Shown here: positions 3,489 to 63,226 of the stretch, in pieces
Layout of the letters: each line of letters begins with the position of its first letter
How positions within the stretch are numbered: position 1 is the first letter of the stretch
Assembly: GCA_021613535.1 (NCBI GenBank)
Contig: CP075492.1
Coordinates: 17,298,001 to 17,362,000, forward strand
Direction: 5' to 3'
DNA from: Adineta vaga
Lineage: Eukaryota; Animalia; Rotifera
DNA: 64,000 nt
Program-made: the position numbers and the translations under genes
Notes under the pieces: generated by a model
What the model was told of the DNA's origin: nothing
The model's input: only the letters and a program-made list of their open reading frames with translations
The model's database searches: none

Positions 3489-3557
3489 GGTGTGGGTGGG
3501 TGTGGGTGTGGGTGAGTGTAAATAGTGATCCCTTCATTATACACACCCTCAAGATGG
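3489..3557 (-). repeat. Hairpin element E1 (tail on right arm)
   Basis: GGTGTGGGTGGGTGTGGGTGTGGGTGAGTGT...ACACACCCTCAAGATGG. Confidence 0.9.
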
Positions 3558-4119
3558 TACGGCGACGCCCACTTACCCGACGATTTCTGGATACGCCGCT
3601 AATGAAAAGATAATATAATTGACTTCTAAAAAAATGGTATTTTATTATTGTTTGGGAATTTAAAATTCCTCTGCAACATATATATGAGAGTAATCTATAT
3701 ACGATGTGAAAAGTTTGATCTATTAACGAGTGTGATTTCTAGTCTTGATTCGAAATGCTTACATTTTATTTGTTAATGAAAGATAACCGTTGTTTTGTAA
3801 TTAGTAAAAGTGTATACCATCTGTTTCTCTAATTATAATAGTCATGATTTCTTCTATTTATTGTGTTCGTAGATTTTTTGATAAATATAAAACCTAACTT
3901 CGTCATTAAAGAATGATATAAACGCTTTTTTTAATTTCTATTTCCTCGCAAAGGCGTTTTGTCAGATCTGTGATTGTATGTGCGATAAACGTTTTTATAG
4001 TCGTTGATTCTCTTCATTTGAGCATTTGCTATAAATAACAAGAGTTAACTAAAGTTTTCCGTATATATCTTTTACTTTATATATTTCTGATAGAAGTTCA
4101 GATCTATTATAAAAGAAAA

Positions 4120-7100
4120 ATGAATTTTGCGATTAACACAGCCAATATAATGTTATATATCTTATTTATAATACAATTGTTGTGTTCAATAACAAGAACT
4201 CAATTCAATTTATACTACACTGATGACAATTATAATGTGGGTAGTCTATATAAAAATTGTCTTCGTCATTATAGTTTCATGGAATGGGATATTTCGGAAA
4301 TGGTCGAATATTGTCTTGATTCAATAGATAATAATGATATAATGGTTGAACCATTTCCTAACACAATTAGTAATAATTTTACATTCAATAAATTACGTCA
4401 ACTAAATATAAGTGCCACAAGAGCTTCTATCATGGTCTGCATCAGTCGATGTAGCGGAACAATATCAATTTTATCTTGAAAACCCAGCAAACTCATCTTC
4501 ATCAAATGAAACTTTTTTCAAATGTAAAAAACCATGGTTTGGCTCTCGATGTCAATACTCATTTGGTTTAGGTCGAGTGTATGACTTTGAAGAAATTGTG
4601 GCCAAAACATTTAAAAAAAAATTATTCTCTAGTCCACCATATCTAGTAAGTAATTTAACATGTTATACTCATTTACAATGTAATCGTGGTAGTTCTAACA
4701 TATGTCTTGATTGGCGTGAGGTATGCGATGGACGTATTGATTGTATTGATGGAGGTGCAGATGAAGAAGAATGTTTTGCTTTAGAAATGAACGAATGTAA
4801 TAAAGATGAATATCGATGTTATAATGGATTATGTATACCAAAAGATTTTTATAATGATAATTATCCTGAATGTCTCGATATATCTGATATTATTATAAAC
4901 AGAGAATATAATCATCTGAGTATTGGACATATAAGTGTATTTAACACTGAAGAACGTTCATGTATACCGGGTTACAAACAATTTAAATGTGGAGATGGAC
5001 GATGTGTGACAGATTTTGATGAATGTCTCAATAAACGACATTTATTATTATATCAATCGATAAGTCTACAAGGAAATTTAACATCTTCATGTTGGTCAAT
5101 AATGGTTTGTCTAACTAAAATTTCAAATGAAATGAATGGTACGTCATGTGAAGAAATCTTGGAAACATCAAATATTCATAAATATTTGCAAACTTGTGAT
5201 GATATTATTCAGTTTCCAACTGTTCCAGTACTTTTTGGTCATGTACGCTTTTTATATGTTCGAAATAATACTTATAATGAGAATCGTACATTAGCTCTCG
5301 TGCCTGATTATATCTGTTATGATAATGAACTATGTGATTTTCTTCGTCCGACATTTCATCATGGGATTTACAGTTGTATTATATTCAATTTCAATATGAT
5401 ATTTCAAACATGGTCTACTATTATTAGCGTAGTTGAACCTTATTTTCGTCAATGTTTGACACGACTTGAAAATAAAAATGCATCTCAATCTCAACATACA
5501 TCCTTGTATTGCTGTAAAAATTCATCGAAATGTATTTCAAAACATCGTATTCTTGATAATATTTCTGATTGTTATTTAAATGATGATGAACACGAATACG
5601 AAAGTAGTTGTTTACTCAACAATGCACAACGTTTTAAATGTGATAATGATAATAAATGTTACTCGTCGATAGTATCTAAAGATATATGCCCTCTCAAGTC
5701 TTTATATAATTTCGATGAAATTAGTTTCAATCATATATGTGATCGAGATGTTCAAATGTTTCCTATACTTATCAATGGAGAAAATCACACTGATGAAACA
5801 GAATGTGAACATTGGTCATGTAATAATTATTATACACAATGTGATGGATTTTGGAGTTGTCCATATGGAGAGGATGAAGAGAATTGTACAACAAAACGAC
5901 AGATTTGTCCGTTAAGATCTCTTGCTTGTGTATCTCCATTCAATTATACATTGACATGTTTATCGGCACATCGAGTTAATGATGGAATTATCGATTGTCT
6001 CGGATCAGCAGATGAACGTCATTATTGTCGTAATCTTGTTAGGAATTCACTTGGTTATTATGGTTTTCGCTGTTGGAACGAAAGTGAATGTATCGCACCT
6101 GGTGATCTATGTGATAAAAGTCAAAAATGCTTATTTAATGACGATGAAATGTTTTGTGATGATTATCAAGAAGATTGTACCGAATGTGATCATACTGAAT
6201 GTACTGATGTGATAGAAGCTCTTTGTCGTGCTAGCTATTTATATATATTCAAATTCTCATTGGAAACATCACCAGTATATCCACCAATTTCAGAACAAAG
6301 AACAAATGAATACATTTCTCAACAACCACAAAACTTACCTCGTATTGACAAATTAATCACAACTGAACCCTATGATCGTACATGACCATGGCGTTGTAAT
6401 CATGGTATTTATGTTAGTATCTGGCCTGGAAATAATACTTCAGAATATCGATGTTTTTGTCCATCACCTTACTATGGTGATCATTGTCAATATCAAAATC
6501 AACGTATAAGTCTTACACTACAAGTAATTATTATTGGTAGAAAAGGTTTCTATGCTATACTTGCTACTTTAATTGGTAATGATGGTGATTATGAGGTAAT
6601 TAATTCTTATCATGAACTAACATTATTCAATACTCGTGAATGTGATCGTATTCATAACATATATCTTACTTATTTATCGCGTCCAAAAAATAATTCGATG
6701 AACTATAGTATTCATATTGATGTCTATGATAAAGTTAACTTAATATATCTTGGTACTTGGTATTATCCAGTTCTTTTCCCATTTTTACCTAGTAATCGAA
6801 TGGCTATTATTTTAGTTGTATCAAATAATCAAGTATTTGGTCATAAACAGTGTAGTTTAATATGTAACAATGGTGAATGTATGAAATATATGAATGACGA
6901 CAAGATGTTTTGTCGATGTCATACATGTTGGAGTGGTTCTCGATGTGATATTCCTATTCGTTGTAGTGATTGTGCATCGGATTCGATTTGTATTGGTATG
7001 ATTTATAATCGATCGATATGTCTCTGTCGACTTGATAAAGGTGGTCTACGATGTTTACTTCCACTTTCATGTCCAGAGGGTTCGTGTGACAATAATGCTT

Positions 7101-8758
7101 CTTGTATTATGACCGATATCCGTATGCATGAGAGAAGTTTTACTTGCAATTGTTCAAAAGAATTATGGGGAACAGTTTGTAACTTTCAAAGACCAAAATT
7201 TCAGCTTGCCATTAAAAATATAAAATATTCATCGCCAATTATCTTGATGTATATTTTCACTGTTGGTATTTTCGATCCTCGTTATCTAGAATTGGAACAG
7301 ATTGTCGTACCCGTACAGTTAAAAATGTTTCAAAAACCTATAGAGATATACGTGGAGACAGATTTTAAATTGATATTTGCCAAAATTGACCAAAGCTTTT
7401 ATTTAACTATTGCTCAAGAAACTTTTAAAAATAATATCTCTACATCTATTGATCCTGCTCAACGATGTCCATTGATCAATGAAGTTTTAAACACATCATT
7501 AGCAAATTTACATCAAATTCGACGAATTAAATATTATTATACGATATGTCAAAATGATGTGAATCTACGATGTTTTTTTGATGACCCATACATGTGTTTA
7601 TGTACTAATGATCGACATGCTAATTGTTTGAAACTAAAGCAAATTCCTTCAGTATGTCGACATAAGACTTATTGTGAAAATAATGGACAATGTTTAGACG
7701 ATGGCAGTTTATGTCCAGTAGAAACAGTTTGTAATTGTACGAATTGTTATTTTGGTGATCGTTGTCAATTTCAGGCTCAAGGTGTCGGATTAACATTAGA
7801 TGATATTTTACGTTATGAGATTGAACCAACTATCAGCTTATTTAGTCAAACAAATTTAGTTAAATGGTGTACATCATTAACAATAATTATGTTAATTGCA
7901 GGTTTAATTAATAGTGCATTAGCTATGTTGACATTTCGTATGCAAAAATCTCGAGAAGTTGGTTGTGGAGTATATCTTCTTGCATCATCTGTAACATCAT
8001 TACTAACAGTAACCATGTTGGCATTGAAATTTTCGTTTCTTCTTTTTACTCATATCAATTCAGACATTGATAATTCTGCTGCACATGCAGGTTGTCGATC
8101 ATTAGAATTTATTTTGAAAACTTGTCTATATACAGACAATTGGTTGAATGCTTGTGTAGCTTTAGAACGTTTAATGACTGTATATAAAGGAGTTTATTTT
8201 AACAAATTGTTGAGTAGACGCATTGCACGTCGGGTAATTCTATTACTACCATTCGCAATTATGGTATCAATTATTCATGAGCCTATTTATCGAAAATTAT
8301 ATAAAGATGAATTTGAACAGCGTTTATGGTGTTTATTTCTTTATTCACAATCTCTACATAGATATAATGTATTTATTTCACTTGTTCATTTACTTGGTCC
8401 ATTCTGTGCTAATCTTTGTTCATCTGTCTATATAGTTATTGGTAGTGCGCGACAACGCGCATTACTACAACCGCGAATCAGTTATCGTCAACATCGACGG
8501 CAACAATTAATGGAACATAAACATCTTATTATTAGTTCAATGATTCTTGTTATTTTGTCAATGCCTCGTATCGTCACTGCGTTCATATCCGGATGTATAA
8601 AAACAACTCATAATTCACAATTATATGCTGCAGGTTATTTCATATCATTTATTCCATCAGTAAGTATTTTCGCGGTGTTTGTAATGCCATCAGACTTTTA
8701 CAAAGAACAATTTAAAAAGTCCCTTAAAATTGGACTAATACTAAATCCTTGTCGTTGA
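4120..8758 (+). pseudogene. LDL-receptor class A/EGF-repeat 7TM receptor, disrupted
   Basis: Signal peptide, LDLa repeats (CLDWREVCDGRIDC..DEEEC), EGF repeats and a rhodopsin-like 7TM (ACVALER). Frameshift near 4412 and in-frame TGA at 6383-6385; 6386-6697 is open and in frame with ORF 6698-8758. Confidence 0.85.
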
Positions 8759-9080
8759 TCATTTTTTTTTGAAAATAAATTCAATATTAATTGTATGAAT
8801 AAACTTTCTCTGTACTACATTAACATGTCTTATTGATAATGAATGTGTGAAAACATATATTCGTTTCTCACTTTAATCTATACACCTGACTGATATGCTT
8901 ACAAAATTAACCTGTCAGTATTGAACTGTGTTTTTATGACAAATATAAAAAATAATTCAATTTGATGTTTTATGTTTAGAACGTGACGCTCCTCAAAATG
9001 ACAGTAAAAAGACGGGGGATCCAATAATCAGTAGCGATGAAAGCTATTGCATAGTTGCCATGATTAATCATAATTACAAA

Positions 9081-9142
9081 CCATCTTGAGGGTGTGGGTG
9101 TGGGTGAGAGTATTGGATGAGAAAAATACCCCACACCCACAC
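9081..9142 (+). repeat. Hairpin element E2 (closest to consensus, tail on left arm)
   Basis: CCATCTTGAGGGTGTGGGTGTGGGTGAGAGTATT-ggatgagaaa-AATACCCCACACCCACAC. Confidence 0.92.
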
Positions 9143-9390
9143 ATTGCTTTTAAACGAACACTATCATCCACCCAAATGTTGGTATTATGTCAGATTGCTA
9201 AATGTGGAATTATTTGTTAGGATTTGAAGAACGGTTCCGTTACCATGAGAAAAGGTTATTGGCTAGTGACCGTCACCTGTAGTGGACGCTGTTTATTTGT
9301 TGTACAGAATGACAAAGGAAATGAAAAATAAAACCAAAAAGGTTTTCATTATGAGATGTCGGCAGTCTATCTGTGTCATTATAATCTCGT

Positions 9391-9885
9391 CTAATCAATG
9401 AATTCTCGTAGAGCTTGTTCAACAGCACGTTGTACGTCCTTCTCAACTTCATCTGATCGAGGCATAGGGTTCAAACGTAATGCTTCGGCTTTCAGACGAC
9501 TAAGGCGTTCTCGTTGAGCCTGAACAGGTGTAAGATGATGTTTTGGGCTCTGCTCAAGGTCATGCTGTTCAGGAGACACGTGAATGTTGTTAAAAGGGAT
9601 GTCAATATAAGTCTCTAGAATTTCCGATGCATTATCAGTTATTCATTGGCATAAAGGCTCATATTCCGATGTCTTTCGCTTTATGTATTTGTTTAGGCCG
9701 CGAACGTTGTTTTCCGGTAATAATAAATAAGGCGAACTGTATGTTGGTGTTGCGGTAATGCGCGTCCGAGCCTTTGTGTTGCATCGTTTGATAACAAATT
9801 TAATGAATAGACCCGTTAAACCAATGAGTATTATAGTACCCGGGATACCAAAGCCAAGTCCCAATTTTGTCCGATAATCTACCAT
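9391..9885 (-). pseudogene. Small single-pass membrane protein with in-frame TGA
   Basis: MVDYRTKLGLGFGIPGTIILIGLTGLFIKFVI forms a TM segment. ORFs 9643-9948 and 9391-9579 are in frame across TGA at 9643-9645. Confidence 0.5.
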
Positions 9886-10150
9886 GGTTTTGTTATTTTG
9901 ATTGTTGTGAGTATATTGGGCTACACAGATGCGACAGAAGTCCAACAATATCGACAGACGTTAAAACATAAACAAAACCAAATGAAGCAGATCTAATGAA
10001 ACAAGCATAAAAATCATTAGAACACTAATTCAGCTTTGCTATTTGTCGCTTTCTCGTTTATATCAGCTTTTGAATCAGATGTCTTAGTTTATTGCATTTA
10101 CATTACTTAGACCTGATCGCCGAGTTGGACATTTAAAAAAAACTGATAGC

Positions 10151-10226
10151 GAGTGTGGGTGTGGAAAGAAGACATGAACACCCTTACTCTCACTCTCACT
10201 CACACTCATACTTACTCTCAAAGTGG
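10151..10226 (-). repeat. Hairpin element E3 (degenerate)
   Basis: GAGTGTGGGTGTGG...CACTCTCACTCACACTC..ACTCTCAAAGTGG; the right end resembles CCCTCAAGATGG. Confidence 0.7.
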
Positions 10227-10490
10227 GAAAATTCTTGTGTATAATAAACTAAAGAAATCGTTTGAACAACTCGCTCGCGTCTACCGACGGACAAAAAAGT
10301 TGAGCATTTTCAACCACCACAAATAGAAAAAGAAACATTACACTCGCATTCCATCGCTTATCTATGCATCGATTTACACTTTCGCCTATCGGAATAAGAA
10401 CAATGATTTTTCTGAAGGGAGAATACATAAAAGAAACGAAAATTTTTTTCTGAGAATGGAAACAAGAATAAAACAATTCCTCTCGTAACA

Positions 10491-11286: not shown

Positions 11287-11395
11287 GCTGTAAATTTATT
11301 GCGAATGAGAGGAAAAAACAGAAACGAAAACGAACCGTCAATACTGAGAGACTTTTTGCCAACAATACATCTAAGTTAAAAAAACTAGTTTACGA

Positions 11396-11440
11396 TGGGT
11401 GTGGGTGTGAGGGTTGTTTTGATACACCCACACTCAACAG
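11396..11440 (-). repeat. Hairpin element E4
   Basis: TGGGTGTGGGTGTGAGGG-ttgttttgat-ACACCCACACTCAACAG. Confidence 0.85.
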
Positions 11441-11638
11441 CTAATAATAATGGGAAAATTTTCATTTATCTTGTTTGATAATCATAATATAAGAATAATC
11501 TTTTTCGATTGTAATAAACTAATAATCAAAAGTGAGATGATTATCCGCTTCGCTATGCGGCTTTAATCTCTCGAGTAAAATTTTACACACAACATTTCAC
11601 GATGCTATACGATACATGTTTATTTATTCTTAAAAGTC

Positions 11639-11700
11639 GGAGTGTGTATGGTTGTCATGATATTGGTTGCAGAAAAACCAACACTATCACACCCTCAATG
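11639..11700 (-). repeat. Hairpin element E5
   Basis: GGAGTGTGT...TTGGTT-gcagaaa-AACCAA..TCACACCCTCAATG; ends 8 bp from the stop of the 3112-aa gene. Confidence 0.7.
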
Positions 11701-11708
11701 CTAGTCAT

Positions 11709-23542: not shown

Positions 23543-23593
23543 ATCGAGCGTGTGAGGTATAGATGTAGGTAAAGAAAATATACTCTTACACCT
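23543..23593 (+). repeat. Hairpin element E6 (very degenerate)
   Basis: ATCGAGCGTGTGAGGT..GATGTAGGT...TACTCTTACACC; lies between two genes like the other copies. Confidence 0.35.
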
Positions 23594-23835
23594 TGAATAA
23601 GTCGTCTCTATTCTTCATTATAAGCCTTTTCTTCCCAATGTCAACATTACATCACACACATAGCCTCCAATTTTTTTCCAACTTCTGTGTAAATAAAGAG
23701 GTTGCTTTTTCATTTAATTTTTTTTGCGCAGTAGTCTATAAATAAACTTTTGCTTTCGGATGTTGGAAAGAAATAATCAGTCCGATCGTCTTATATAAAT
23801 CAATTCAGATTCTGTTGTATCAGCATCATTTATTC

Positions 23836-24975: not shown

Positions 24976-25802
24976 ATGTCTTTAACATTACTCGGTGAAA
25001 GATTAACAGTTGGAATTGGTTCAATATTTTTCGTGACAGATTTTCTAGGAAATGGAATAAATATTGTCATATTTTCTAATAGAAGAATAAATCATCGAAG
25101 TTGTTGTTCGTTTTATTTATTAATTGGATCAATAATAAATATATTATATATTTGTATTATTTTAATTCCTCGTATTGTAACAGCAGCAAATGGAATTGAT
25201 TTAACTCGTACTTCATTAATTTGGTGTAAAATTCGAGTATTATTTACTGGTTCACTTCCACCAATGTCTTTAACTTGTGCATGTTTATCAATAATTGATC
25301 AATATTTATCAACATCAAAGAATATTCATATTCGTCAATATAGTAATATGAAATAACATCAAGAGGATGTAGTGCATCTAATACAATTTATTCGATTTAT
25401 ACCACCATATATCTTACAACTATTAATGGTTTTATTCCGGTGTTTATTTTAATGATATTTGGATGGTTAACTTATAGAAATATTCGTCAAACACAAGTTC
25501 TTGCTCATAGACAAGCAGATCGTCAATTAACGAAAATGATTTTAATGCAAACAATGATTGTTATTCTTAGTAATATAATATATGAAATTAATAATATGTA
25601 TCGTTTTATTACAGCTGGAATAACTAAAGATACAGATAGACAAATTAAGGAGAGTTTTGTTACAACAATTGTTACATTGATTTCTTATTTTTATTCTATT
25701 GGAAGTTTTTACATATTTCTGATTTCATCAAGTCAATTTCGTCAAAAAGTTAAACAACGACTATCGTTTTGCCAAAGAAACAATCAAATCAATCCAACTT
25801 AA
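24976..25802 (+). pseudogene. GPCR with internal deletion/stop
   Basis: Two ORF halves (TM1-3 ending near LSIIDQY; TM5-7 with DRQLTKM and SSQFR). The TM4 region is missing around 25356. Confidence 0.8.
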
Positions 25803-25851
25803 GGTGTGGATGAAAGGATGAATATTTAACCTTTATCTACACCCACACACA
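25794..25851 (+). repeat. Hairpin element E7 overlapping the GPCR stop codon
   Basis: CCAACTTAAGGTGTGGATGAAAGG-atgaatatttaa-CCTTTATCTACACCCACACAC; the TAA at 25800-25802 lies inside the tail. Confidence 0.8.
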
Positions 25852-26022
25852 TATACTAGTTCCATCTGTTTGCAATAAAAATAAAAAATTATTATTGGTT
25901 TATCTTTCTTTCAGCTATAATGACGACGAAATTTCATAATCATCAAAACTTTACTATTAATCAAAACGAAATGTAGCTGTCAATTATACATTATATAGAC
26001 AACGCAACGGAATATAACAAAT

Positions 26023-27305
26023 ATGTCTAAATTTGTTATTTTACCGATAGAACTTATTTATCGAATTCTGGATCAGCAGAATGATTGTACTTTGTTTTTT
26101 TCGATGCAAAATGTCTGTCAACGATTTAACCAAATTCTCAAAACGTACCATCGATATCAGGTAATTCTGATGAAAACAGTTTTTCACTCAAAAACGTTGA
26201 AAAAGTTAAGTTTAACATAGGTATTATCGAGACTTTTTTTCAAAAGTAACCATCATCGCTTTTTTCACTCTGTTTGAGGGTGTGGTTTTTGATTTTGAAG
26301 ACGTTCACATCCACATCGAAATATTGTGCCATGTTTTGCTATTCTAGAAAATCGTTGCATTGGATTTTGGGTACACTGAAATCAGAGTAAAAGGAGCACA
26401 ACACCTAGCCCATGCATTGAAAACAAACATGGTAAGAATCATTGCCTATGTATACACCTATTATCTTCTTCGATTTCATCATGAGCAGACACTCACCACA
26501 CTGAATATACAATCCAATCAAATCGGTGACAGAGGAGCTCATTATATTGCCAATGCATTGACAACAAACACGGTAACATTCATTCTCTATGCACACATCT
26601 CCCCTATTCATATGTTCTATCATAAAATAGATTCTCATTACACTGAATCTCAGTTACAATCATATCAGTGGCGAAGGAATTCAACATCTTAGTCATGCTC
26701 TGCAAATAAATAGGGTAATATTCATTTGTTATAAAGATAACGTCCATCTTTATCTATTTATATATATTAACAGACACTCATTTCACTGGATCTTGGACAT
26801 AACGAAATTGATGACAAAGGAGCTCAACATATTAGCAATGCATTGCAAACAAACACGGTGTTATTGATTCACTATATGCTTACATATGACATATTAATTT
26901 AATTTGTCATAAATTTAGACACTTACTACACTGAATCTCGGATACAATTGGATTGGAGTAAAAGGAGCACAGCATTTTGGCTATTCACTGGAGATAAACA
27001 CGGTAATATTCATTCTCTGTGTACATATTTTATATATTCAGCTATTTAATTATCAATAGGGGCTTACTACATTGAATCTCACTAACAATTGTTTCGGAGT
27101 GAAAGGAGCACAACATATTGTCGATGCATTCGAAACAAACACGGTGACTTTCATTCTCGATGCATCAATCTATCAGCTCTTTCTGTTTCATCATCAACAG
27201 ACACTCTCTTCACTGGAGCTCGGGCGCAACGGAATTCGAGAGGAGGATGTAGAACATTTCAGAAGCGCAGCAGGATCTCCGCTTAGAATGGTACGATGGC
27301 ATTGA
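26023..27305 (+). CDS. F-box plus RNI/NLRC3-like LRR protein, multi-exon
   Basis: LPIELIYRILD F-box exon, then repeated exons of about 84 nt (TLTTLNIQSNQIGDRGAHYIANALTTNT) with GT-AG introns. Confidence 0.85.
26274..26317 (+). repeat. Hairpin element E8 (intronic)
   Basis: TTGAGGGTGTGG...TTCACATCCACATC in the first intron region of the LRR gene. Confidence 0.55.
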
Positions 27306-27428: not shown

Positions 27429-27487
27429 CATCTTGACGGTGGGTATATATATGAATGGAGAAGATATGCACATGCCCACACCTACCC
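27429..27487 (+). repeat. Hairpin element E9
   Basis: CATCTTGACGGTGGGTAT...ATGCCCACACCTACCC. Confidence 0.8.
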
Positions 27488-29040: not shown

Positions 29041-29098
29041 ATCTTAAGGGTGGGTGTAGTTAAACATGAGTCTATGCTCCTAACACAAACCCACACCC
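29041..29098 (+). repeat. Hairpin element E10 between convergent genes
   Basis: ATCTTAAGGGTGGGTGTAGTT...AACACAAACCCACACCC. Confidence 0.85.
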
Positions 29099-29110
29099 AA
29101 ATGAATTCCA

Positions 29111-34532: not shown

Positions 34533-34623
34533 AATTGATTTATAAAGAATCTAGAATAATAGACCTCAACAATTACTCAATATTTCTAGATATTTTTCTC
34601 AGCATGTAACGAAAAAACTCTTC

Positions 34624-34643
34624 GGTGTGGGTGTTGGTGTGCG
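34624..34643 (+). repeat. Half-site E11
   Basis: GGTGTGGGTGTTGGTGTGCG with no clear partner arm. Confidence 0.5.
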
Positions 34644-36606
34644 TAAATAAGTATATGATAAATCGAAATGTTAATGTAATATAGAATTCAAATATGAATC
34701 TTTTCCTCTCTTTCTAACTCTTCTCCCCTTGTTGTATGGTCAACTCAGTTGTCAAATTGTATGTTATAGTCATTATACTCCTCTTGAAAAGAAAATCATA
34801 AAGAGGTCGCCACTTAGCAAATTATATCACTTATCCTTTTATATTCCTGTTCTCTCTAGATATTCTTTATTCACAAGTGTTGATTGTCCAAAATATGTTC
34901 TTGTATAGTTCTACTTAATTAGTTGTGTTTTTTTAATAATTGCCCATCTAGTTATAAAGTGACAATAAATCTGAGTAGTAAAAAAATAAATAAATAAAAG
35001 AATTTCTTTGCTGCTTTCTTTTGACTTTGGATAATAAAATGAATACAAAAGTATGATGATGCTGTCACATATCAGCAGAACTACAAAGTATATAAAAAGA
35101 GAGAATCAATAACGTTTTACATGGATTACGAGAAAAGAATAGATTTTATGATAAAGAGAAACAATAAAAGAGAATAAATGTGTGGGCTACATACATCTAT
35201 AAATATTCGGATTTTGTAGTGAGTCTTTCGGTATAGCTTTGACTATGGATTTGTTTCTTTAGTGATCAATAAATTTTAAAAATGATCACAGAATGAACAA
35301 ATCCGTATTCAAAGTATACCATAACTCTTCAAATATTTTAAAATCACATAAATATTGAAATTTCAATGCTGAGCATTAGTGATACTTAGGAAATATACAG
35401 TTAGCTTTTATGTGTTATACTCGTCGCAAACGCGCACTTTTACCTTCATCCTCAAGATCAATTTCTATTCTAATAATTATAGCTTTACAACAATATTACA
35501 ACAGAATAGAGCAAGAAATCTTCATGAACGATAAGATCTATTCAAATGGTCTTGTACCAAAATCACCAGATAATAATTTAAGCAAACCAATGATCATTAT
35601 CTCTCGAAATAGACGAGATATTAATGTCGACAAATAAAATGATCTTATATTGATTAGATAATTGGTTAAACTCAACATAAAATATATGATTGTCCATTGT
35701 TCAATAGTCTTATTCTCATTTTGTGTTGCCAAAAAATACCATAGTACATTTCAATTCATTCTATTTGACGTGTCACACAACATCCATAATCAAGTAGAAT
35801 ATCATATAAAAGACGAGAATATAATGATTGTAGTGATAAAAATCATCAGAGAGATCATTTCTAGGTGAAGAATTCGAGATATTCGCGATGTTGGACCATA
35901 TGTACATGCATATCGATCAAGAAGAGATGTTATTAAGAGATTCAATTTGAAGTAAAAATACTAAAAGAAAGAGTCTGAATTTACAGGTGAAACTATCGGA
36001 TATATTTGCAAAAACTATTGCTTGAAGATCGATTAAAATATTGTGGAAAAAAATTAATGATATCAATAAATGAAACTGAGAGTGTATAAAAACAAAATGA
36101 ATTCTTTCAAAGAGTTGATTGAAGAAATGTAAAAAAATTCCTAATGAAACCAATAATTGGAATAATGAGAGGAAGTTTAGTAACAAATCTCTCTTGTACA
36201 AGATTCAAATCATCGATAATATTTCATTATTTGATAACATTTAGTGTAGATTATTTTAAATGTAGGTAGAATGGACAAAAATATGACATTATATCTAAAG
36301 AAATCTTTGATGAATTCTAGAAAAACATTGTTCGGATAGAAGGTATAGTGTTTAAAAAAATGATATTCAATGCTTTACTTCAAAAGTGTTTCGTTTGCCG
36401 TGAATTGTTAATTGTCATAATGGTGTTCTGTTATCAGGAAAAAGGATTTGAGAAAAAAAATGTTCTCATGAATTATTCAGATCTTTTTACGTGAGAAACT
36501 CAGCAATTATATGAAAGGAGTTAATAATATTAACAGTATAAAAACACAGATGAAATATTGGTAATGCTCATAAGCTTAATAGTATTGAGATTGCAGTGAT
36601 CACGAT

Positions 36607-36681
36607 GGTGCAGGGTGAGGATGTGAGTGAGAGTAGTATATTTACACATCAATCATATCTACACCCACACCCTCAAGATGG
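36607..36681 (-). repeat. Hairpin element E12
   Basis: GGTGCAGGGTGAGGATGTGAGTGAG...CTACACCCACACCCTCAAGATGG. Confidence 0.9.
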
Positions 36682-38881: not shown

Positions 38882-38923
38882 ATCTCGAGGGTGTGAGTAA
38901 ATGAAAGATACTGACCCACACCC
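38882..38923 (+). repeat. Hairpin element E13
   Basis: ATCTCGAGGGTGTGAGTA-aatgaaaga-TACTGACCCACACCC. Confidence 0.85.
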
Positions 38924-39422
38924 TTTTTTCCAGTATAAGGATCCATTTTTCTGAGTAATAGAGGCATAGAGTAGATTACACTTGATTATCAAAAGGATGT
39001 TCACTCTCTTACTTTCAGTTTTTCGAACCAATTGTACCAAAAAGTTACAATTTACACATATATATTCGAAAACAAATATAAAACATTTATAGATTTTGAA
39101 AAACATGGACATACACGAAAATCATAACTGTGATTTATCGATCTAATCGACCAACAATATGCTGAACGTTTTCAGAAGCTTGTATTTACAAAAGACCAGA
39201 CAATATGGAATAATCAAAACTAAAATGTTTTTTTCTTTTCATCATAGAATTATTTTATCAAATATTAATTGAATTCACAAAATCCTCTTTGTTTTACATC
39301 GTCTCGGTATGCATGGAAATACCTTGAATTTTGAGATCACTTATAATCTGTTATCTCATTTCTTCAATGTATATATAAAAAACTATTTCATATAAAGAAC
39401 AAATAATTTATTTTGTTTTCTT

Positions 39423-40930: not shown

Positions 40931-40988
40931 GAGTGTGTGTGAAGATGTAAGAGTTATATGTAAATCCTAACACCCACCCTCAAGATCG
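40931..40988 (-). repeat. Hairpin element E14
   Basis: GAGTGTGTGTG...AACACCCACCCTCAAGATCG. Confidence 0.8.
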
Positions 40989-44144: not shown

Positions 44145-44192
44145 CCATCTTGAACGGTTGTGTAAGGTTAATGAAAGAAAAACTTACATCCA
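44145..44192 (+). repeat. Hairpin element E16
   Basis: CCATCTTGAACGGTTGTGTAAG-gttaatgaaagaaaaa-CTTACATCCA; starts 26 bp after the stop codon. Confidence 0.7.
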
Positions 44193-44326
44193 TAATAATA
44201 AAACCTGTTTTCTCGCTTCTATAACGTGATAGAAATCCAAATATTTGTTGATATTTGATCCTTTTATTTTATTAACAATGAAATAATAACACTTTTTTTT
44301 CTATATATCACTATCGTCGATTAAAA

Positions 44327-51193: not shown

Positions 51194-51280
51194 ATCTTGA
51201 GGATGGGTGGGTGTGGGTGTGGATCAAGAACATAGAATCACTTATATACACATCCCCACCAATAACTACATTTACCCACC
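51194..51280 (+). repeat. Hairpin element E18 between convergent genes
   Basis: ATCTTGAGGATGGGTGGGTGTGGGTGTGG...ACACATCCCCACC..TACCCACC. Confidence 0.85.
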
Positions 51281-56000: not shown

Positions 56001-56161
56001 GTACTGATTAGTATTTGAACGATGTGCATCCACCTTTTCAAAATTTTACTCTGTTAAAAAAATGATTTGATTTTCGAAATTTAACAATAGCACGAAGAAA
56101 ATAAAGAAGCATAAAATTTTCTCGAGTATATTATATAAATTTAGATTTTAGCAAAATTTCA

Positions 56162-56373
56162 ATGAAAACAAGAAAAATATCAAAATAAGTGAAAATAATA
56201 AAGAGAAACGATTCATTTTGAACGTTTCGTTGACCAAGTCAATATCATCAGCACCATCTCCACGACCAGTTACTTTATTTGAAGCTAATTTAACTCACTT
56301 TGTAGGCAAAACGTTCAAAATTATTCGTTTCTCTTTATTATTTTCACTTATTTTGATATTTTTCTTATTTTCA
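56162..56373. repeat. Long inverted repeat (arms about 65 bp, spacer about 80 bp)
   Basis: ATGAAAACAAGAAAAATATCAAAATAAGTGAAAATAATAAAGAGAAACGA..TTTTGAACGTTT matches its reverse complement at about 56308-56373. Confidence 0.85.
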
Positions 56374-57031
56374 TCGAATATAGTATTTGACAATGATGAA
56401 AAAGTCCTGAGATTTTACATCTATATGTTAAGATATCATTAATGACTTTAATAAATAATAGAAAAATGTCGATATGATTATCATCATTCACCTGTGGACT
56501 ACTGTGAAAACAGATGAAAAGATATCTTTTAATGTAGTAGATTGTTTTATAGAACATACAGTAAATTGAGAAACGAATTCAAGACTATAGAGATAAAAGA
56601 TTTTTCGATTTCGTTCACCGATATAGTAATTAAATAATGTATATTTTGCAAATAATAATATACATTGATATGATATATAGTATCATCGAGTATTATTTCA
56701 ATTAATTTTAGTACGGTTTTTCTGAACATACTATATTATCTATTCAAATTTCATCAAAAGGATGATAGAAAGAAAAAAAATAATGAAAGTAATTTCGCCT
56801 GAAGATTTTTTATGTCAAATTATTAAGAATACAAAATATTTTTTTTTAGTATCGATGGTACGAGCATCTTTAATTAAAATAAGATATTTATTATGTAAAT
56901 AACGCATTAGTGATTATAATATATAAACTAAGTTTGCAAACGCAACGCGTCATTTCTCGTCGATTATAATCGCTAATAACATATCATCGTGAGCTATATA
57001 CAAGATTTTTCTCTTTCAAATTCAAATAATT

Positions 57032-58012
57032 ATGTCTTTAATAACATTATTAAATCTTATTCAAACAAATTTCTTTCGATTTGGTGGTCCATTCTTAATT
57101 ATTATTGGTACAATTAGCTGTACATTCAATCTTATCATATTTATGAAAGCTACTCTTAGAAAAAATCCCTGTTCAATTTATTTCATTGCTGTCACCATTT
57201 CAAATTTCCTACTTATATATTTACATTTCTTTCCTCTTGTAACTCAAGTTGGATACAATTACGATCCAACAGCAGTTTATATTGTTTATTGTCGTATTCG
57301 ATTATATGCTGCGTATGTTTTTAGTTCTTTGGGGCCATTCTTTTTAATTCTTGCATCAATCGATCGAACATTAATAACTTCAAGAAATGCTGTGATACGA
57401 AGACGTAGTACATGTCGTTTGGCTATAACATGTATCATTGCTTTAACACTCTTTTTCATGATATTCCATATTCATGCATTTATCTATGTAGAAATTATAC
57501 AAATTGGACCAGATTTATTTCTCTGTTATTATCAACCTGGAAACTATTCAGTTTTTGTCAGTTATTGTTCACTTGTCTTCAATGGAACGATGATACCTCT
57601 ATTGATGATCGTATTTGGATTTTGGACAATCAGAAATGTCGGTAAAATACAAAGTAACGTGAATCCTGTTGTTTTATCGATGAGTATATCGACAACAATG
57701 CCTAGAAGACAAATTATTGAATCGAAGGATCGTCAATTAATTAAAATGTTACTCGTTAACATTAGTGCCTATATTATCCTTCGATTTCCATTTGTCATGT
57801 ATATTCTTTACCAACAAATTACTCAATATCAATCAAAATCAAGTGATCAACTAGCGATAGATTACTTTGTCTTAAACATCACTTATTTTCTTTTCATGGT
57901 TGTGTCGACCATTGATTGTTATATAAATCTATTAGTTTCGAAAACATTTCGTTCCCAATTAAAAGATACCTTTTTAAATTGTCAAATGTTTCATTTTGTT
58001 CGACCGAACTAA
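57032..58012 (+). CDS. Rhodopsin-like GPCR, paralog of 22036-22974
   Basis: FRFGGP, LRKNPC, LASIDRT, CYYQPG, SKDRQLI and LVSKTFR are shared with 22036-22974. Confidence 0.9.
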   Translation: MSLITLLNLIQTNFFRFGGPFLIIIGTISCTFNLIIFMKATLRKNPCSIYFIAVTISNFLLIYLHFFPLVTQVGYNYDPTAVYIVYCRIRLYAAYVFSSLGPFFLILASIDRTLITSRNAVIRRRSTCRLAITCIIALTLFFMIFHIHAFIYVEIIQIGPDLFLCYYQPGNYSVFVSYCSLVFNGTMIPLLMIVFGFWTIRNVGKIQSNVNPVVLSMSISTTMPRRQIIESKDRQLIKMLLVNISAYIILRFPFVMYILYQQITQYQSKSSDQLAIDYFVLNITYFLFMVVSTIDCYINLLVSKTFRSQLKDTFLNCQMFHFVRPN

Positions 58013-58314
58013 AAATGAAAAAGTCAATGACTTGATTTTTTTTAATATTATCATTCTAAATGTATTTTTGTTGTTCGTTAATTCTGTTTTCTATTTAATA
58101 TTGTTTATAAATTTTTATGAGATAAATAAAGTTAATCATGCAACACAGTACTGACAATTTTAAACATTCGATTTACAACAATAATGTCAAGTTTGGAGTG
58201 TTCGCATTACCCATTGGTACTGAGTAAGATTCGAATCTAACTGAATAAATAGTTTGCTTGCAGAATATGCTGCAGTAGATTATCAAACAAACAAAATTCA
58301 GTTTCATTGATAAA

Positions 58315-58388
58315 CCTTCTTGAAGGCGTGGATGTGCGTGGAATTGACGAATAAATATACCAATCACACATGTACCCACACCCACCCT
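58315..58388 (+). repeat. Hairpin element E19 between convergent GPCRs
   Basis: CCTTCTTGAAGGCGTGGATGTGCGTGG..ATTG...CAATCACACATGTACCCACACCCACCCT. Confidence 0.85.
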
Positions 58389-58666
58389 AATATTTGAAAT
58401 CTATGTAAAAAAAATACATGTTTTTTTGTTCTTTTCGGTTGAAAGTACTCAGCCTCAATCACGAATAACACAAAGATATTATTAGACATCTGCATACTAA
58501 CTCAAATACGGTTACTTAAAGGCGCTAGAATCAAACGTCGTGTGACTTCTGACAAGATGTGACATATGTAGATAGAATATTATTATTATTTTTCATCATT
58601 CCGGCAAACATCATTTATATGTTACAGATAATATGTGGGTAGAACATCAAAGGATTTTCTAGGCGC

Positions 58667-59696
58667 TTAATCCGTATTGGCTTGATTTTCAGTATGAATT
58701 GGAATAATTCGATTTTGTTGACATTTATTCGCAAGCAGGTCATATAAAACATACTTTGCTTGTCGACGAAATCTTTTCGAAACACACATATAAGTATAAA
58801 ATGAATTCTAAAGAAAAGCAAAATAAAAATCGGATGAGAAAAAAATAAAGAGTTCTTACGCCATTGCTTAGAAAACTTAATGTAAATGTAATGGCACTGG
58901 CTAAACTCAATTGAGCAAGAAACACTGGATTACGATTGGTATTTAATGTTGAAATGACATATATTATTGAATATGGCATATAAGTACAAACATAAACACA
59001 AATTTCCACAAGGACCATTGTTGTTAATTGTTTATCTAATTCACGTCGAATAAGTGGATTTGCTCGTGTTGCTAAACTTCGTGCATTTCGAAATGCTAAT
59101 AAACCAAAAATAACAGCAATTAATGGGAAAAGATTTCCATACACTATTGTATAAACATAAGCATGATATTGATTGAATTGTAAATTTGATGAAGAACAAA
59201 TTGATGGATTTATTATTGATAATTGATCGAGATAGATGTAATAAATAGTTGCATGACAAAACCAAATTACTATGGTTATTAAGATTAGACGATAAGCGAT
59301 TCGAATGTTGGACCATCGTTGCCATTGAGGACGAGAACATGTTGCGAAATATTGATCAATTACCGATAAACATAAACATGTTAAAGCTGATAAATAACAT
59401 GTTGCAGAAAGAAAACTTCGTATTTGACAATAAAAAACTATAGTCGATGTAAAATTAACTGGAAATGCCATGGATATAGCAATAAATGATGTACTGAATA
59501 TTAATCGAATGAAATTAAACAATGCCATAAACATTAAATAAAATGAACAAGAACTTTCTCGAAATGTTTTTAAACTAAGAAAAACTAGAAGACTAAAGAA
59601 TTCACTTAGAATAGCTATGAAACATATTGGAATTGAGACATAAAGACCAATTTTTGATCGTGTAGAAGCAAGTGAAGCGATGTAAGCGGTATCCAT
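58667..59696 (-). CDS. Rhodopsin-like GPCR
   Basis: SLKTFRESSC, VIDQY and RRELDKQLTTM. Intron 58808-58859 gives the C-terminus NSFYTYMCVSKRFR with stop at 58667-58669. Confidence 0.88.
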
Positions 59697-61059
59697 TTTT
59701 AATATTTCATAAGAAAAAGAAAAAGTTAATGATAAGATTCTCTCTTTTTTACTTTAGATTTTAATGACGTTGGCTTCTGTTTCGAAGATACGCAAAGCGA
59801 TTATCATGTTTTCTCTTTGTAATTAGTAGAGAACAATTATAGAACATATTTTAACGATAAAAATTAAGTTTATTTGTTCGTTATCTATTATACGGAAGAG
59901 CGTTTTTTCCTGATTACTAAAAGGAATGGATTTATAGAAGTAAATGAAGATAATTCGTATGTATTAATGGATTAATAGTATCGTTTAATGACAAACAAAT
60001 TGTTTTTATCAACACTAAAAGGAAAAAAAAACTTTTTCTTCTCTTTTTAAACGCTAATAGAATCAATTGAATAAAGAAACAAAGTTGTTCACAGAAGAGA
60101 AGGATGATTATCTTGTCTCTTATTCTTATAATTACACACTCATTCTGTATATTCATCTTTAAGATTAAAAAGCATGTCAGAAAGCGAGTTTTCCTATATT
60201 GAAAAAACACGTTTATATAATAGAACAAGTTATTGAAACCAGATTTGTGTGTTCAGGAATAAGAAGAACATAGGCAGGAAGTGAATAAGCGACTTTTCGC
60301 ATAAAATCAGTTATAATGATAAACCTGAGCTACACAATCAATAAGTAGCTATCTCTGATCTTCGATGAGGTTAGCTTCATTTGAATTAAAAACACGAAAA
60401 CTATGAACAAATGTCGAAGAACAAACACAGTCTATGATTAAGTCATTCTGCATAAGAATCCTATCTTCAAATTGAAACCGACTACTTTTCTAACAAAGAA
60501 CATTATCATTCCGTCAATTAACATTTGGGTGATATTCTTGCTAGTCATTAACGATTGTACGAAACGTTGAAAGAAATTAGAGGGTAATGTAAGTATTTGC
60601 TCGATAATTTATTGACTCTCATCATTTATAAACCGAATTTTACAATTGAAAATGAAGTAAATCTTTTCTGTATTCTTCAATTTTAATACTAATGACGTTT
60701 TTCGATGGAAAAAGTGTTCAAGCAGTTGTGCTTTTCACCATACAGATGATAGAGATGCCTATACTCCGTAAAAATGCAGAGAAAAACAAGGCTATTTTTG
60801 AAAAAAAATGAAGAAGAAATCTTTCTTTCTAAGTCACTAAGTACTTGCATAGATGGATAATTATACATGGTATCTATGACGATTATTATTATAGGATAAC
60901 AGTAGGAAAGGTATTGTCTCATCCACATCCGATGAGTGTATTGTTGATCGATAGTCTTTTGTTTCAATAAAATTATAAAAAAACGAAAAAGAAAAATAAG
61001 TAGTGGACATTTTTTCATCAACTCAATGATTTTATTGGCATCTGTTATCATTCGATTTA

Positions 61060-62063
61060 TTAACGAATGAGTTCATTAATTTTTTGTTGAAGTTCATTTG
61101 GCCATATGGCAATGTTCGCATTGTTATCATTATATTTAGATAGATATAAAGTTGTGTCACCACCATTCCGATATTCTGCAACGTGAAGTAGATAAATATA
61201 TGGTTTATTATTCCCGTAAACAAAAATAGGTCCTCCACTAGCTCCTCGTCCTGCATTACAATCGTGTAAGAAAAGTTTCGATGACAATTCTTTGATAATC
61301 CTACAATTCATTTGTGCTCCAGCCGTTTGACCATCCTTGAAATTTACCGAATAGCCGACCAGAATTCCGGGCGACTGTTTCATAATATTAATAGGAACGA
61401 TTTTTGTACCTAATCAACCTTGAGTATCACCTAATTTTTTATCTAAACGAAGAAGTGCCCAATCAGCTGCTCGGTTATCATCCGGTTGATTTGTACCCCA
61501 CCATGTATACGTCACACGAGCTTGTAGATTTGATTTTCCATTGATCACACATTTGGATAGAAATACAAAGAGTTCGTGCATAATTTATGTGTTTTCGCAT
61601 CGAGCACACAATGAGCAGCTGTTACAACTAGATCACGTCCCTATTTTTTCAAAGAAAAATATGTGCAAATCAAAGAGATATTCTTTCTATAATCTCTTAC
61701 TACAAGAGTTCCCGTACAACCTGTACTTGGTTTTCCAATAGCACTCCAAGGATAAGCAGTACTGTAACGATAAAGATATCACCCCATGTGGTGATATCAA
61801 TATATGATCATAGCCCGAAACATGCTGCTAATGTATATCATTAACTATGAGAGAAAAAAACAAACGTCATGCTCTTATATATTAAAAAAATCATGTACAT
61901 ACCTGTCATAATTTTGATCGAAAGAAAAATATCATTATCTTGCTTCTTTTTCTTTTGCCTATGTCGACATCAATCTTTTAAAAATGCAATGCATAACATT
62001 CTTTATGGATCATTCTATGCGATGAAATAAAAAACAAGCAATCAGCAACAAACCAGCATTCAT
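61060..62063 (-). pseudogene. Trypsin-like (V8/glutamyl endopeptidase-type) serine protease, disrupted
   Basis: VTAAHCV, DWALLRLD and HDCNAGRGASGGPIF form the catalytic triad motifs. In-frame TGA at 61414-61416 (G*LG); the 5' exons are uncertain. Confidence 0.75.
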
Positions 62064-62143
62064 ATCAAATAGCCTTAAAAAAACAATATTTTCAATGTCG
62101 GCTATCTCTTATTTGCAATCATAAGAAAATATGATCTTTTTTT

Positions 62144-62212
62144 AGGATGTGGGTGCGGGTGATGGTGTAGATGTGAGTGAAGAAGCTACACTCACACCCT
62201 CACCCACCCTCG
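62144..62212 (-). repeat. Hairpin element E20
   Basis: AGGATGTGGGTGCGGGTG..GTGAGTG-aagaagcta-CACTCACACCCTCACCCACCCTCG. Confidence 0.88.
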
Positions 62213-63170
62213 TGCTCTTGTTGCCTACGATACAACAGCATCCGTTAGTGGTGCTCAAACGTCCAGTTGATCCGGTGATATAAATCAAGGATGGGGTGTC
62301 TGATAACATTGGTGTCATTGATCTAAATGACAATAATTCTGAAAACTAGATTTTAAGCAAGATCTAAACTATATAACACTATCATTATTCATCATGCAGT
62401 ATAATGATTTACAAGTCACTGATTGTTTGTTACATGTATTAATTCGGCATAGTAATAAAATTGAAAGAAACCGTTTGAAAAATACGATGTAAAATACTGC
62501 TAATATATAAAAATTTGCTTTCTTAAAACAAACGATGAATTCTGTATACACTCCTGTGATTGAAAGAAAAAAATATGGGGATTTTATTATTGTACTGAAT
62601 TTTTATCTTTTCTTTGTCGTCGAGATAGTCTATCTATTTATTTATTTCGTTATCCCATTACGTTTATTCTAGAATAAAATACCATGAAAAACAGTGAATT
62701 GTCTCATCAGAGGTGATGCAGAGGAATAAAAAATCAAAATGCATACGTTCATTGCTTCACATAACGTAAACAGAAAAGAATTGGTGTGTAATCAATTCTA
62801 TAAAGTCTTCATACTTAGAACAATCCAAGAATATTGTCACAGGCTCTGAAATTCCTCATAAAAAGCTTTAAGAAACTTTCTTTGTATAAAGTCTAACAGA
62901 AAAAAGAACGCTCTATTCTTCTACGCTATTTCATAATACTTCAACTAATATTATAATAATAAAATTTTGATAAGATATGTTTTGTGCGCCTGTGTCACGG
63001 TACCATCAATGCTCATTCTAGAAAAAAGGTGGGGTGTTTTTTGAATAATTTGTGGTTGAAACAAAATAGAGAACTACCGTTTTCATCGTTGGAAAGAAGA
63101 CATAAAAATACATCAAAACCTATATTCCAGACTTTCTCAATCTGTTTGTTGTAAGGTTTTCAAGGATATA

Positions 63171-63226
63171 AGTGTTGGGTGTGTGCATTCTGATTATCAT
63201 TTCAACGCATATCCACATCCACATCC
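63171..63226. repeat. Hairpin element E21
   Basis: AGTGTTGGGTGTGTGC...GCATATCCACATCCACATCC. Confidence 0.65.

Follow-up and report, generated by a model that had tools for sequence, protein, structure and literature searches.

Head-to-head telomere-repeat elements between Adineta vaga genes as probable scars of joined, telomere-seeded DNA ends

Introduction

The chromosomes of bdelloid rotifers can break on a massive scale without killing the animal, and foreign genes, of which these rotifers have more than any other animal, are gathered in the subtelomeres, where short telomere-repeat stretches are already known to be enriched. In the 64,000-nucleotide stretch of Adineta vaga DNA analysed here (the window), which lies on chromosome 3 about 3 Mb from the chromosome end, inverted telomere-like elements recur between gene-sized units, and the initial annotation proposed that they bound mobile gene cassettes, by analogy with the attC sites of bacterial integrons. 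Which process, then, placed paired telomere repeats between the genes of this region? The head-to-head pairing of the repeats, a fixed templated tail beside them and paralogue breakpoints located exactly at the arms are new; in the literature we found no description of the tail, or of the head-to-head arrangement in rotifers.

Results

Read on the + strand, an element consists of (TGTGGG)n (the G-arm), a loop and (CCCACA)n (the C-arm), and a 12-nt tail, CCATCTTGAGGG, may be present on the outer side of an arm, and only there. When coordinates were printed and telomere-like words scanned, arms were recognisable at 17 of the 19 sites listed in the initial annotation, 23543 and 44145 being weak. 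In a scan with 11-mers (up to two mismatches), both arms in G-then-C order were found at 3487, 9086, 10149, 11394, 25802, 26274, 29047, 36613, 38887, 40931, 51204, 58325, 62144 and 63175, a single arm at 11687, 27471 and 34621, and no arm at 23543 or 44145; at the latter site the tail-like CCATCTTGA is the sole remnant. The 19 window elements are as follows (no strand assigned except for E11; z, folding relative to dinucleotide shuffles).

E1, 3487-3557: G-arm 3487-3519, loop, short C-arm 3541-3552; full 12-nt tail in reverse complement, ending at 3557 and facing the unit to the right
E2, 9081-9144: full tail 9081-9092, G-arm to 9111, 16-nt loop, C-arm 9128-9144; z -4.4
E3, 10149-10228: G-arm 10149-10166, decayed C-arm 10195-10211, decayed tail-like end; folds at shuffle level
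E4, 11394-11437: G-arm, 8-nt loop, C-arm; z -3.2
E5, 11639-11706: decayed G-arm, C-arm 11687-11698, short tail (TTGAGGG, minus strand); about 13 nt past the stop of an intact DUF3638 gene
E6, 23543-23605: weak candidate, missed by every arm scan
E7, 25794-25853: G-arm 25802-25813, C-arm 25835-25853; z -2.6; begins at the stop codon of a gene
E8, 26274-26317: short tail TTGAGGG, decayed arms
E9, 27429-27487: near-full tail (2 mismatches), decayed G-arm, C-arm 27471-27487
E10, 29041-29102: decayed tail, G-arm 29047-29061, C-arm 29083-29102
E11, 34621-34644, + strand: lone G-arm, a half element
E12, 36607-36681: decayed G-arm 36613-36629, C-arm 36657-36676, full tail 36670-36681 facing right; z -3.2
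E13, 38882-38925: tail with mismatches (ATCTCGAGGG), G-arm, C-arm; z -4.0
E14, 40931-40988: decayed G-arm, C-arm 40967-40982, tail (1 mismatch) facing right
E15, 44145-44205: weak; tail-like start, decayed arms; 27 nt past a GPCR stop codon
E16, 51194-51260: tail (3 mismatches), G-arm 51204-51225, C-arm 51249-51260; about 140 nt past the stop of a BVMO/FMO-like gene
E17, 58315-58388: decayed full-length tail, G-arm 58325-58340, C-arm 58372-58388
E18, 62144-62211: G-arm 62144-62175, purine-rich loop of the recurrent GAGTGAAGAAG type, C-arm 62186-62211; z -3.9
E19, 63171-63227: decayed G-arm 63175-63186, C-arm 63211-63227

The full tails of E1 and E2 face inward and bracket an LDLa/GPCR gene unit, and E12 and E13 bracket an F-box gene unit.

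The motif family is real, as shuffled sequence fell far below the observed counts: 49 relaxed arms were present in the window against 7 in its shuffled version, and the tail at up to three mismatches occurred 12 times against 2.2 expected. The family extends beyond the window, since at a strict threshold the surrounding 264 kb held 105 arms and the shuffle none; genome-wide, an 18-mer of tail plus repeat (up to one mismatch) gave 394 matches and its backwards control 0. Local density is about 0.3 copies per kb and the copies number hundreds to thousands, with arms of 2-8 repeats, loops of 4-60 nt and an element every few kb. The A. vaga telomere repeat is (TGTGGG)n (PMC8494291), and the arm hexamer is this repeat of the species itself; the initial annotation had cited it as the telomeric repeat reported for A. 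vaga. On chromosomes 1-4, the nearest end is no more than 3.5 Mb away for 64 of 73 exact matches (p = 4e-17), so that the elements are indeed concentrated in subtelomeric, accessory DNA.

The order of the arms is nearly invariant. Adjacent arms within the 264 kb were G-then-C in 27 cases and C-then-G in none, exact 11-mers gave 372 against 2 genome-wide, and in A. steineri there were 12 against 1. A G-strand tract followed by a C-strand tract on the same strand is the pattern by which fusion-type interstitial telomeres are recognised.

The tail directly adjoins the repeats, in register with them, and is often found on one side only. It forms a staircase, mostly shortened from its far end to remnants such as AGGG, TTGAGGG or ATCTTGAGGG. 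In 100 arms, the contiguous tail beyond AGGG measured 0 nt in 39, 1 in 21, 2 in 14, 3 in 14, 4 in 1, 5 in 2, 6 in 5, 7 in 2 and 8 in 2, with unrelated sequence past the contiguous part; about 90% of arms have lost part of their outer end. At the most frequent lengths the following template base is a G or a C, which alignment of AT-rich ends by microhomology would predict. Short tails stand on both sides of most hairpins, and the three positions before a full tail are rich in A. The initial annotation is to be corrected here: the tail lies on the outer side, is often one-sided and is mostly truncated.

About 7 of 18 elements folded better than dinucleotide shuffles (z <= -2.5) and the other 11 no better; loop ends paired at 31% against 27% by chance, with no loop palindromy beyond the arms. 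We therefore rejected a hairpin as a selected structure: the arms are inverted, as first described, but "hairpin" is too strong a word for elements of which so few out-fold shuffles. Most loops are unrelated to one another despite some loop families, one 16-mer having 29 exact copies, and words shared among loops are in 4-fold excess. Four related 20-nt loops sit in unrelated flanks, and arm lengths vary freely among copies that share a loop. Rfam returned nothing at gathering threshold in the window.

In the window the elements are located between long ORFs. The initial annotation placed all of them except E7 outside coding sequence; beyond the window, sister elements interrupt the coding sequence of XRN and Sec61-alpha genes. 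Pfam searches of the 20 largest ORFs bore out the GPCRs, NHL, BVMO/FMO and the giant DUF3638 gene of the described cargo, and added LDLa receptors and an F-box protein. A unit may contain several genes, genes with introns in either orientation, or no more than pieces of genes.

Gene fragments terminate exactly at arms. An XRN fragment runs into a G-arm (XRN_N 161-240, XRN_M 3-72 of 443), and a piece of Sec61-alpha is flanked by a C-arm and a G-arm (SecY 150-241 of 306, one intron retained), its homology to three paralogues ending at both arms. In a pair of 99.2% identical copies overlapping by about 790 bp, one copy starts right after a C-arm and the other stops at a G-arm. A 95% segmental duplication ends at window position 1827, where there is no arm, and one haplotype breakpoint in Rotaria is not located at an arm either. 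Truncation of the genes beside E5 and E7 was ruled out, their C-termini being complete relative to paralogues (for E7, one on chromosome 6). Breakpoints between A. steineri isolates were dismissed as scaffolding artefacts because they coincide with N gaps. Paralogue searches with 12-20 kb of the window matched gene bodies at 65-90% identity and were uninformative on boundaries; the read data were Logan contigs, which break at arms and yielded neither haplotype indels nor RNA ends.

The tail also occurs at sites of telomere healing. At locus L045 it has C-strand repeats on one side and, on the other, a copy of a 170-bp Athena-like repeat that is truncated at its 5' end, and at L017 it precedes a short G-arm joined to such a 170-bp repeat. 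At L020 it precedes a short G-arm joined to a repeat with a weak, sub-threshold hammerhead match, the sole Rfam match in six loci. A. steineri and A. ricciae also carry the tail, at loci that are not orthologous.

Discussion

Taking into consideration the head-to-head order, the staircase tail and the breakpoints at arms, we consider it probable (about 65%) that the elements are scars joining two DNA ends, each of which had first been seeded with a short telomere from an RNA template. We infer the enzyme, the RNA and the joining route as follows. A broken or other non-telomeric 3' end would pair by 0-2 nt with an RNA 5'-(CCCACA)n-CCCUCAAGAUGG-3'. Copying of this template onto the 3' end by a reverse transcriptase, for which telomerase is the simplest candidate, would leave a variable portion of the tail and then a few TGTGGG repeats. 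Joining two seeded ends would then give, on the + strand, unit, tail, (TGTGGG)n, loop, (CCCACA)n, tail' and next unit, and each inter-element stretch would be a former free fragment or chromosome end with both 3' ends capped. The template is probably telomerase RNA, in which case that of A. vaga would carry UCAAGAUGG directly 3' of the template.

If selection removes breaks in genes and promoters while loss of 3' UTR is tolerated, elements would persist between intact genes, as in the window. The subtelomere looks stitched from gene-sized DNA fragments rather than from integron-like cassettes: the proposal that the elements bound independently derived pieces of DNA is supported, and since end healing and end joining fit the evidence, site-specific recombination is not needed. 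Against the scar reading stand the Rotaria breakpoint and the duplication end at 1827, both without an arm, and the recurring loop families, which simple joining of independent seeds does not predict, so that an extra copying step or a unitary element would have to be invoked. As no empty-site allele was seen, the window's own elements would fit either a break repaired in place or an imported fragment. That Adineta subtelomeres grow by ligation of free fragments, own and possibly foreign, seeded by telomerase at both ends, is a tentative extension that we hold to be rather doubtful; if true, head-to-head scars would document physically how genes that are accessory or horizontally acquired were assembled, and the tail, of 12 or perhaps 16 nt, would give the sequence of the rotifer telomerase RNA beside its template.

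The loop families could be explained by a unitary element, in which a short RNA, (UGUGGG)n, loop, (CCCACA)n and tail, is reverse-transcribed whole onto a free DNA end by an Athena-type reverse transcriptase or telomerase, its product being ligated to another end; this would be a tiny non-autonomous retroelement that patches breaks. The dispersal of shared loops into unrelated flanks fits such an origin, as do the A-rich bases before full tails, which would result from copying an RNA whose 3' end is rich in U, and the truncation of both outer ends, which suits variable initiation and 5' truncation. However, the short tails on both sides of most copies would demand internal initiation in most events, arm length varies freely among copies with the same loop, the same tail occurs on single or retroelement-attached arms with no hairpin remaining, and there is no known promoter or defined RNA 3' end; we regard this account as possible but unlikely. 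The intergenic placement, often 0-70 nt from stop codons, could instead suggest a cis-element under selection, acting as a promoter, a terminator, an insulator or a source of small RNAs. There is a resemblance between the tail and a YY1-type CAAGATGG box, a G-quadruplex could form in the G-arm, and telomere-repeat density is reportedly linked to piRNA-covered genes. Against this, arms elsewhere cut coding sequence, most copies have a truncated tail and most elements lack structural stability, RNA-labelled contigs run through E5, and orientation to genes is inconstant, all of which makes a regulatory role very improbable. A YY1-like core promoter in particular was dropped because of the truncated tails, the inconsistent gene orientation and the gene fragments ending at arms.

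Two mobile-DNA explanations share the inverted-repeat layout. A MITE- or foldback-type DNA transposon whose terminal inverted repeats are telomere-like would account for the many copies and for some shared internal sequence; but no target-site duplication, the mark of an ordinary MITE named in the initial annotation, was found in the flanks (direct repeats of 4.3 nt against 4.5 nt in mismatched flanks), so these are not ordinary MITEs. Most copies moreover have truncated termini, arms vary in length, some elements are halves and flanks are non-contiguous at informative sites, and we give this explanation hardly any weight. Lowest in probability is the original proposal of attC-like recombination sites of a eukaryotic gene-cassette system. 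Like attC sites, the window elements are imperfect inverted repeats between gene-sized units, with one boundary per 1-3 genes and accessory cargo. Unlike integrons, they come with no integrase, attI or core-site logic: the lack of an integrase remarked on earlier held in the Pfam scan of the 20 largest ORFs, which revealed no recombinase, and in place of a conserved core site there is only a variably truncated, templated tail. The rules of cassette content and orientation do not hold for units with fragments, several genes, introns or genes in both directions. The arms are the organism's own telomere repeat in healing orientation and fixed head-to-head order.

The closest known case is the vertebrate TERC-ITS, in which telomere hexamers were inserted at double-strand breaks with microhomology, together with adjoining sequence retro-transcribed from telomerase RNA outside the template (Nergadze 2007, PMC2246262; Sola 2021, PMC8537989); 3 of 41 loci are head-to-head, which was explained by telomerase acting at both sides of the break (PMC8537989). 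The arms in Adineta are likewise the species' own telomeric hexamer; however, head-to-head order is here the rule (372 against 2), copies number hundreds to thousands, loops recur as families, and flanks are often unrelated fragments rather than one repaired locus. The extra sequence, putatively copied from telomerase RNA, is a constant 12 nt directly at the repeats. Fusion-type interstitial telomeres, such as the human 2q13 head-to-head array, have a G-strand tract followed by a C-strand tract where two ends were joined. Adineta elements show the same succession on one strand; their short arms and loops, repeated every few kb, differ from a single ancestral fusion.

In ciliates, nematodes and yeast, chromosome healing adds telomeres de novo at broken ends, and telomere repeats would likewise have been put directly on broken ends in Adineta. 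Neotelomeres have been reported at A. vaga deletion breakpoints (PMC13564844). Healed ends stay terminal, whereas the seeded ends proposed here would have been re-joined, becoming internal and carrying a non-telomeric tail. The bdelloid Athena/Terminon retroelements act at free subtelomeric ends, have truncated 5' ends capped by telomere repeats, and form arrays of a single orientation with host genes caught between units (PMC6431247, review; PMC3846280). The elements described here occupy the same subtelomeres, and the tail lies at such a cap at L045; those of the window are head-to-head, with no hammerhead or element body in the Rfam search of the window and no reverse transcriptase among its 20 largest ORFs.

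Read as junction scars, the elements would mark, to the base, where DNA ends were healed and joined in the past, and they offer a testable mechanism of subtelomere growth. Tail plus repeat provides a sequence tag for new junctions after irradiation or desiccation, and for a search for the template RNA. In metagenomes, five of seven matches were GC-rich chance matches, probably bacterial; the tail is also present in two AT-rich, bdelloid-like contigs.

Abundance and location of the elements

The window (C3:17298001-17362000) belongs to an assembly of 100.8 Mb and six contigs from the bdelloid rotifer A. vaga; its distance to the right-hand end of chromosome 3 is about 3 Mb. The telomere repeat of this species is (TGTGGG)n (PMC8494291). 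A family of telomere-like elements had been listed at 19 coordinates in the window, and sequence inspection together with a scan for telomere-like words upheld it: 14 sites carry both a G-arm, (TGTGGG)n, and a C-arm, (CCCACA)n, and three carry a single arm, but those at 23543 and 44145 are too decayed to be scored.

The family is real and abundant. We surveyed the window with 100 kb on each side (264 kb), where a strict scan with 14-mers (at most 2 mismatches) returned 52 G-arms and 53 C-arms but no arm at all in shuffled sequence; these make up 78 elements, spaced at a median of 2.6 kb (0.3 per kb). The 12-nt tail CCATCTTGAGGG, which adjoins the arm, taken with one repeat as an 18-mer (at most 1 mismatch), gave 394 matches in the genome and none for the backwards control. 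On chromosomes 1-4, 64 of 73 exact matches fall within 3.5 Mb of a chromosome end, a zone holding 40% of the sequence (p = 4e-17).

Arm order

The order of the arms is fixed: neighbouring arms at most 100 nt apart in the 264 kb run G-then-C in 27 cases and C-then-G in none, and genome-wide the counts are 372 and 2 (exact 11-mer arms, 4-34 nt between). This is the order that arises when two chromosome-type ends meet; each stretch from one element to the next accordingly starts with C-strand and finishes with G-strand repeats, as a small linear chromosome would.

Hairpin character is weak: better folding than in shuffles was seen for only about 7 of 18 elements of the window, and pairing at the loop ends is no higher than chance. 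A target-site duplication was looked for at the element flanks and is absent, which sets the elements apart from ordinary MITEs. The initial annotation's likening of them to attC recombination sites has to be abandoned: no recombinase is encoded among the 20 largest ORFs, a core site is absent, and the units are unlike cassettes.

Breakpoints at the arms

The same annotation's view of the elements as boundaries is upheld: they separate gene-sized pieces of independent origin within an accessory region. Breakpoints of paralogues and duplicates fall at arms. An XRN gene piece (XRN_N 161-240, XRN_M 3-72 of 443) runs into a G-arm at window 75622, and the match to its paralogue (80%) stops at that same base. 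Between a C-arm and a G-arm lies a piece of Sec61-alpha (SecY 150-241 of 306, one intron kept); in alignments to three paralogues, the similarity breaks off within a few bases of either arm and gives way to a short tail and repeats.

Self-comparison of the 264 kb revealed an overlap of about 790 bp between two copies, 99.2% identical, at window 106170-106962 and 112475-113338 (L035/L036). A C-arm directly precedes the start of one copy, and at the corresponding point the second copy extends further upstream; the second copy in turn is interrupted by a G-arm, at a point past which the first runs on downstream. The two are separated by about 5.5 kb of further arm-bounded units. Simple insertion is insufficient for this arrangement, which requires either that two molecules served as source or that a long staggered break occurred. 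The pair looks like a giant duplication from a staggered break, or like pieces of two homologues.

Neither the DUF3638 gene nor the gene that stops at E7 (the element at 25794..25853) differs from its paralogue in the C-terminus, and the added sequence begins about 13 nt and 0 nt, respectively, past the stop codon. E5, the element next to the DUF3638 gene (11639..11706), is traversed by RNA-labelled contigs. We read the intact neighbour genes as selection, in which fragments and joins persist if they leave coding sequence and promoter untouched, loss of 3' UTRs being tolerated. At a paralogue of the giant DUF3638 gene (L056, C5:1177683 region), a C-arm and tail lie about 110 nt past the stop codon.

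Other duplications were also seen. The mRNA-capping-enzyme gene region (window 1-1827) has two 95% copies nearer the chromosome 3 end (C3:19998773 and C3:19335425) and one 78% copy; no telomere-like arm is present at its boundary at window 1827. L023 and L027 (window -72876 to -70941 and -34752 to -30563) contain a tandem array of about 126-bp period, with units 82-88% identical, and a direct tandem duplication of 2.1 kb (98.5%), neither near an arm.

Structure of the tail

The tail invariably lies on the outer side of the arm and is mostly incomplete. In 100 arms, the contiguous tail past AGGG measured 0, 1, 2, 3, 4, 5, 6, 7 and 8 nt in 39, 21, 14, 14, 1, 2, 5, 2 and 2 cases, respectively, with unrelated sequence beyond; loss is from the distal end, with modes A/GGG, TT/GAGGG and AT/CTTGAGGG. 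The mismatches lack the even spread that decay of a full copy would produce. Such a staircase would be expected if AT-rich 3' ends align by 1-2 bases on a template 3'-GGUAGAACUCCC-5' and are then extended into repeats.

In 36 full tails, A makes up 53-56% of each of the three preceding bases. A few tails exceed 12 nt, with TCACC before ATCTTGAGGG in A. vaga (L004, C1:321 kb) and in A. steineri (L071 23769). Where long tails in the window form pairs (3546/9081, 36670/38882 and 40977/44145), the partners face each other over a unit and not over a junction, an excess that is only marginal (about 3 observed, about 0.8 expected).

Tails at probable retroelement ends

Twenty full-tail sites from elsewhere in the A. 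vaga genome were inspected, and about 14 are hairpins. At two loci (L005 and L017) the tail is followed by a 170-bp repeat (at least 40 copies) that carries C-strand repeats at the end of its sense strand; copies (L045-L050, e.g. C1:556622 and C4:14949245) show 87-99% identity, and in tandem copies a 52-nt segment comes after the C-strand repeats. This repeat is probably the 3' end of an Athena/Terminon family, whose published 3' end structure combines a hammerhead with C-strand repeats (PMC6431247). At L020 the repeat that comes after the tail has a weak match to a type I hammerhead (L020 368-414, C3:92 kb; 25.8 bits, below the gathering score of 34), adjoining tail and G-arm. Its orientation is that expected of a Terminon 3' end joined to a healed end.

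At L045 the tail has C-strand repeats belonging to one copy on one side and, on the other, the following copy with its 5'-truncated start, and truncated Athena cDNA is a known site of telomere-repeat addition (PMC3846280). Because copies of the Athena-like elements bear tails of differing lengths, the tail is not part of them; it appears to belong to the act of adding repeats onto a foreign (non-telomeric) 3' end.

Elements in other rotifers

Around homologous receptor genes in A. steineri, G-then-C order prevails by 12 to 1 with a similar staircase, and 3-4 full tails occur in 66 kb. A. ricciae has one arm with ATCTTGAGGG, Rotaria loci have head-to-head pairs with only short, TGAGGG-type tails, and the full tail with arms is also found in two AT-rich metagenome contigs. 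That the tail stays constant among species although the sites are not orthologous fits a conserved template better than inherited old copies. In Rotaria sp. Silwood2 (L066/L067), two assemblies are collinear for 20 kb at 99.5% and diverge completely at about 20127; no telomere-like arm is present at that point, and one assembly has a head-to-head element 137 nt on.

Proposed end healing and end joining, and recurrent loops

We propose, with a probability of roughly 0.65, that the elements are scars left where DNA ends, healed by RNA-templated synthesis, were joined head to head. The AT-rich 3' end of a non-telomeric DNA end would align by 1-2 bases and be extended through the tail into repeats, and ends healed in this way would then be joined end to end.

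The main rival, a hairpin RNA copied in one piece, is a possible cause of the recurrence of loops. One loop 16-mer has 29 exact copies in the genome, a 20-nt loop is common to four hairpins in the 264 kb with unrelated flanks and differing arms and tails, and words of at least 8 nt are shared among loops 4 times more often than in shuffles. The recurrent types are:

Loop families, genome-wide (e.g. window -98699, -87958, -5132 and 158017): TTAGATAGATGTAGTA, GAGTGAAGAAGATATAC, TTAAGAGTATAGTC and GTGCAAGTCAGTGTCTCTAT types

Members of a loop family vary in arm length and have unrelated flanks. Other possible causes of loop recurrence are that an older junction is copied as a bridge between two G-overhangs, or that synthesis reads through the template boundary.

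Among described phenomena, the vertebrate TERC-ITS comes nearest; in these, telomere hexamers at double-strand breaks accompany retro-transcribed pieces of telomerase RNA, and rare head-to-head loci are ascribed to a second telomerase on the other side of the break (PMC8537989, PMC2246262). The rotifer elements would work in a similar way, with four differences: head-to-head arrangement is the rule, copies are far more abundant, no gap separates the extra sequence from the repeats, and the joined partners are often unrelated fragments. The elements offer base-level markers of, and a testable route for, the assembly of bdelloid subtelomeric gene content.

One locus in a chromosome core (L016 276-325, C5:9.28 Mb) is probably a half scar: a TATAAATA box is followed by 13 nt, a C-strand repeat with full tail, and ATTTT, without a partner G-arm. 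Its layout is nevertheless that of a tiny Pol III-type gene that would encode the template sequence.
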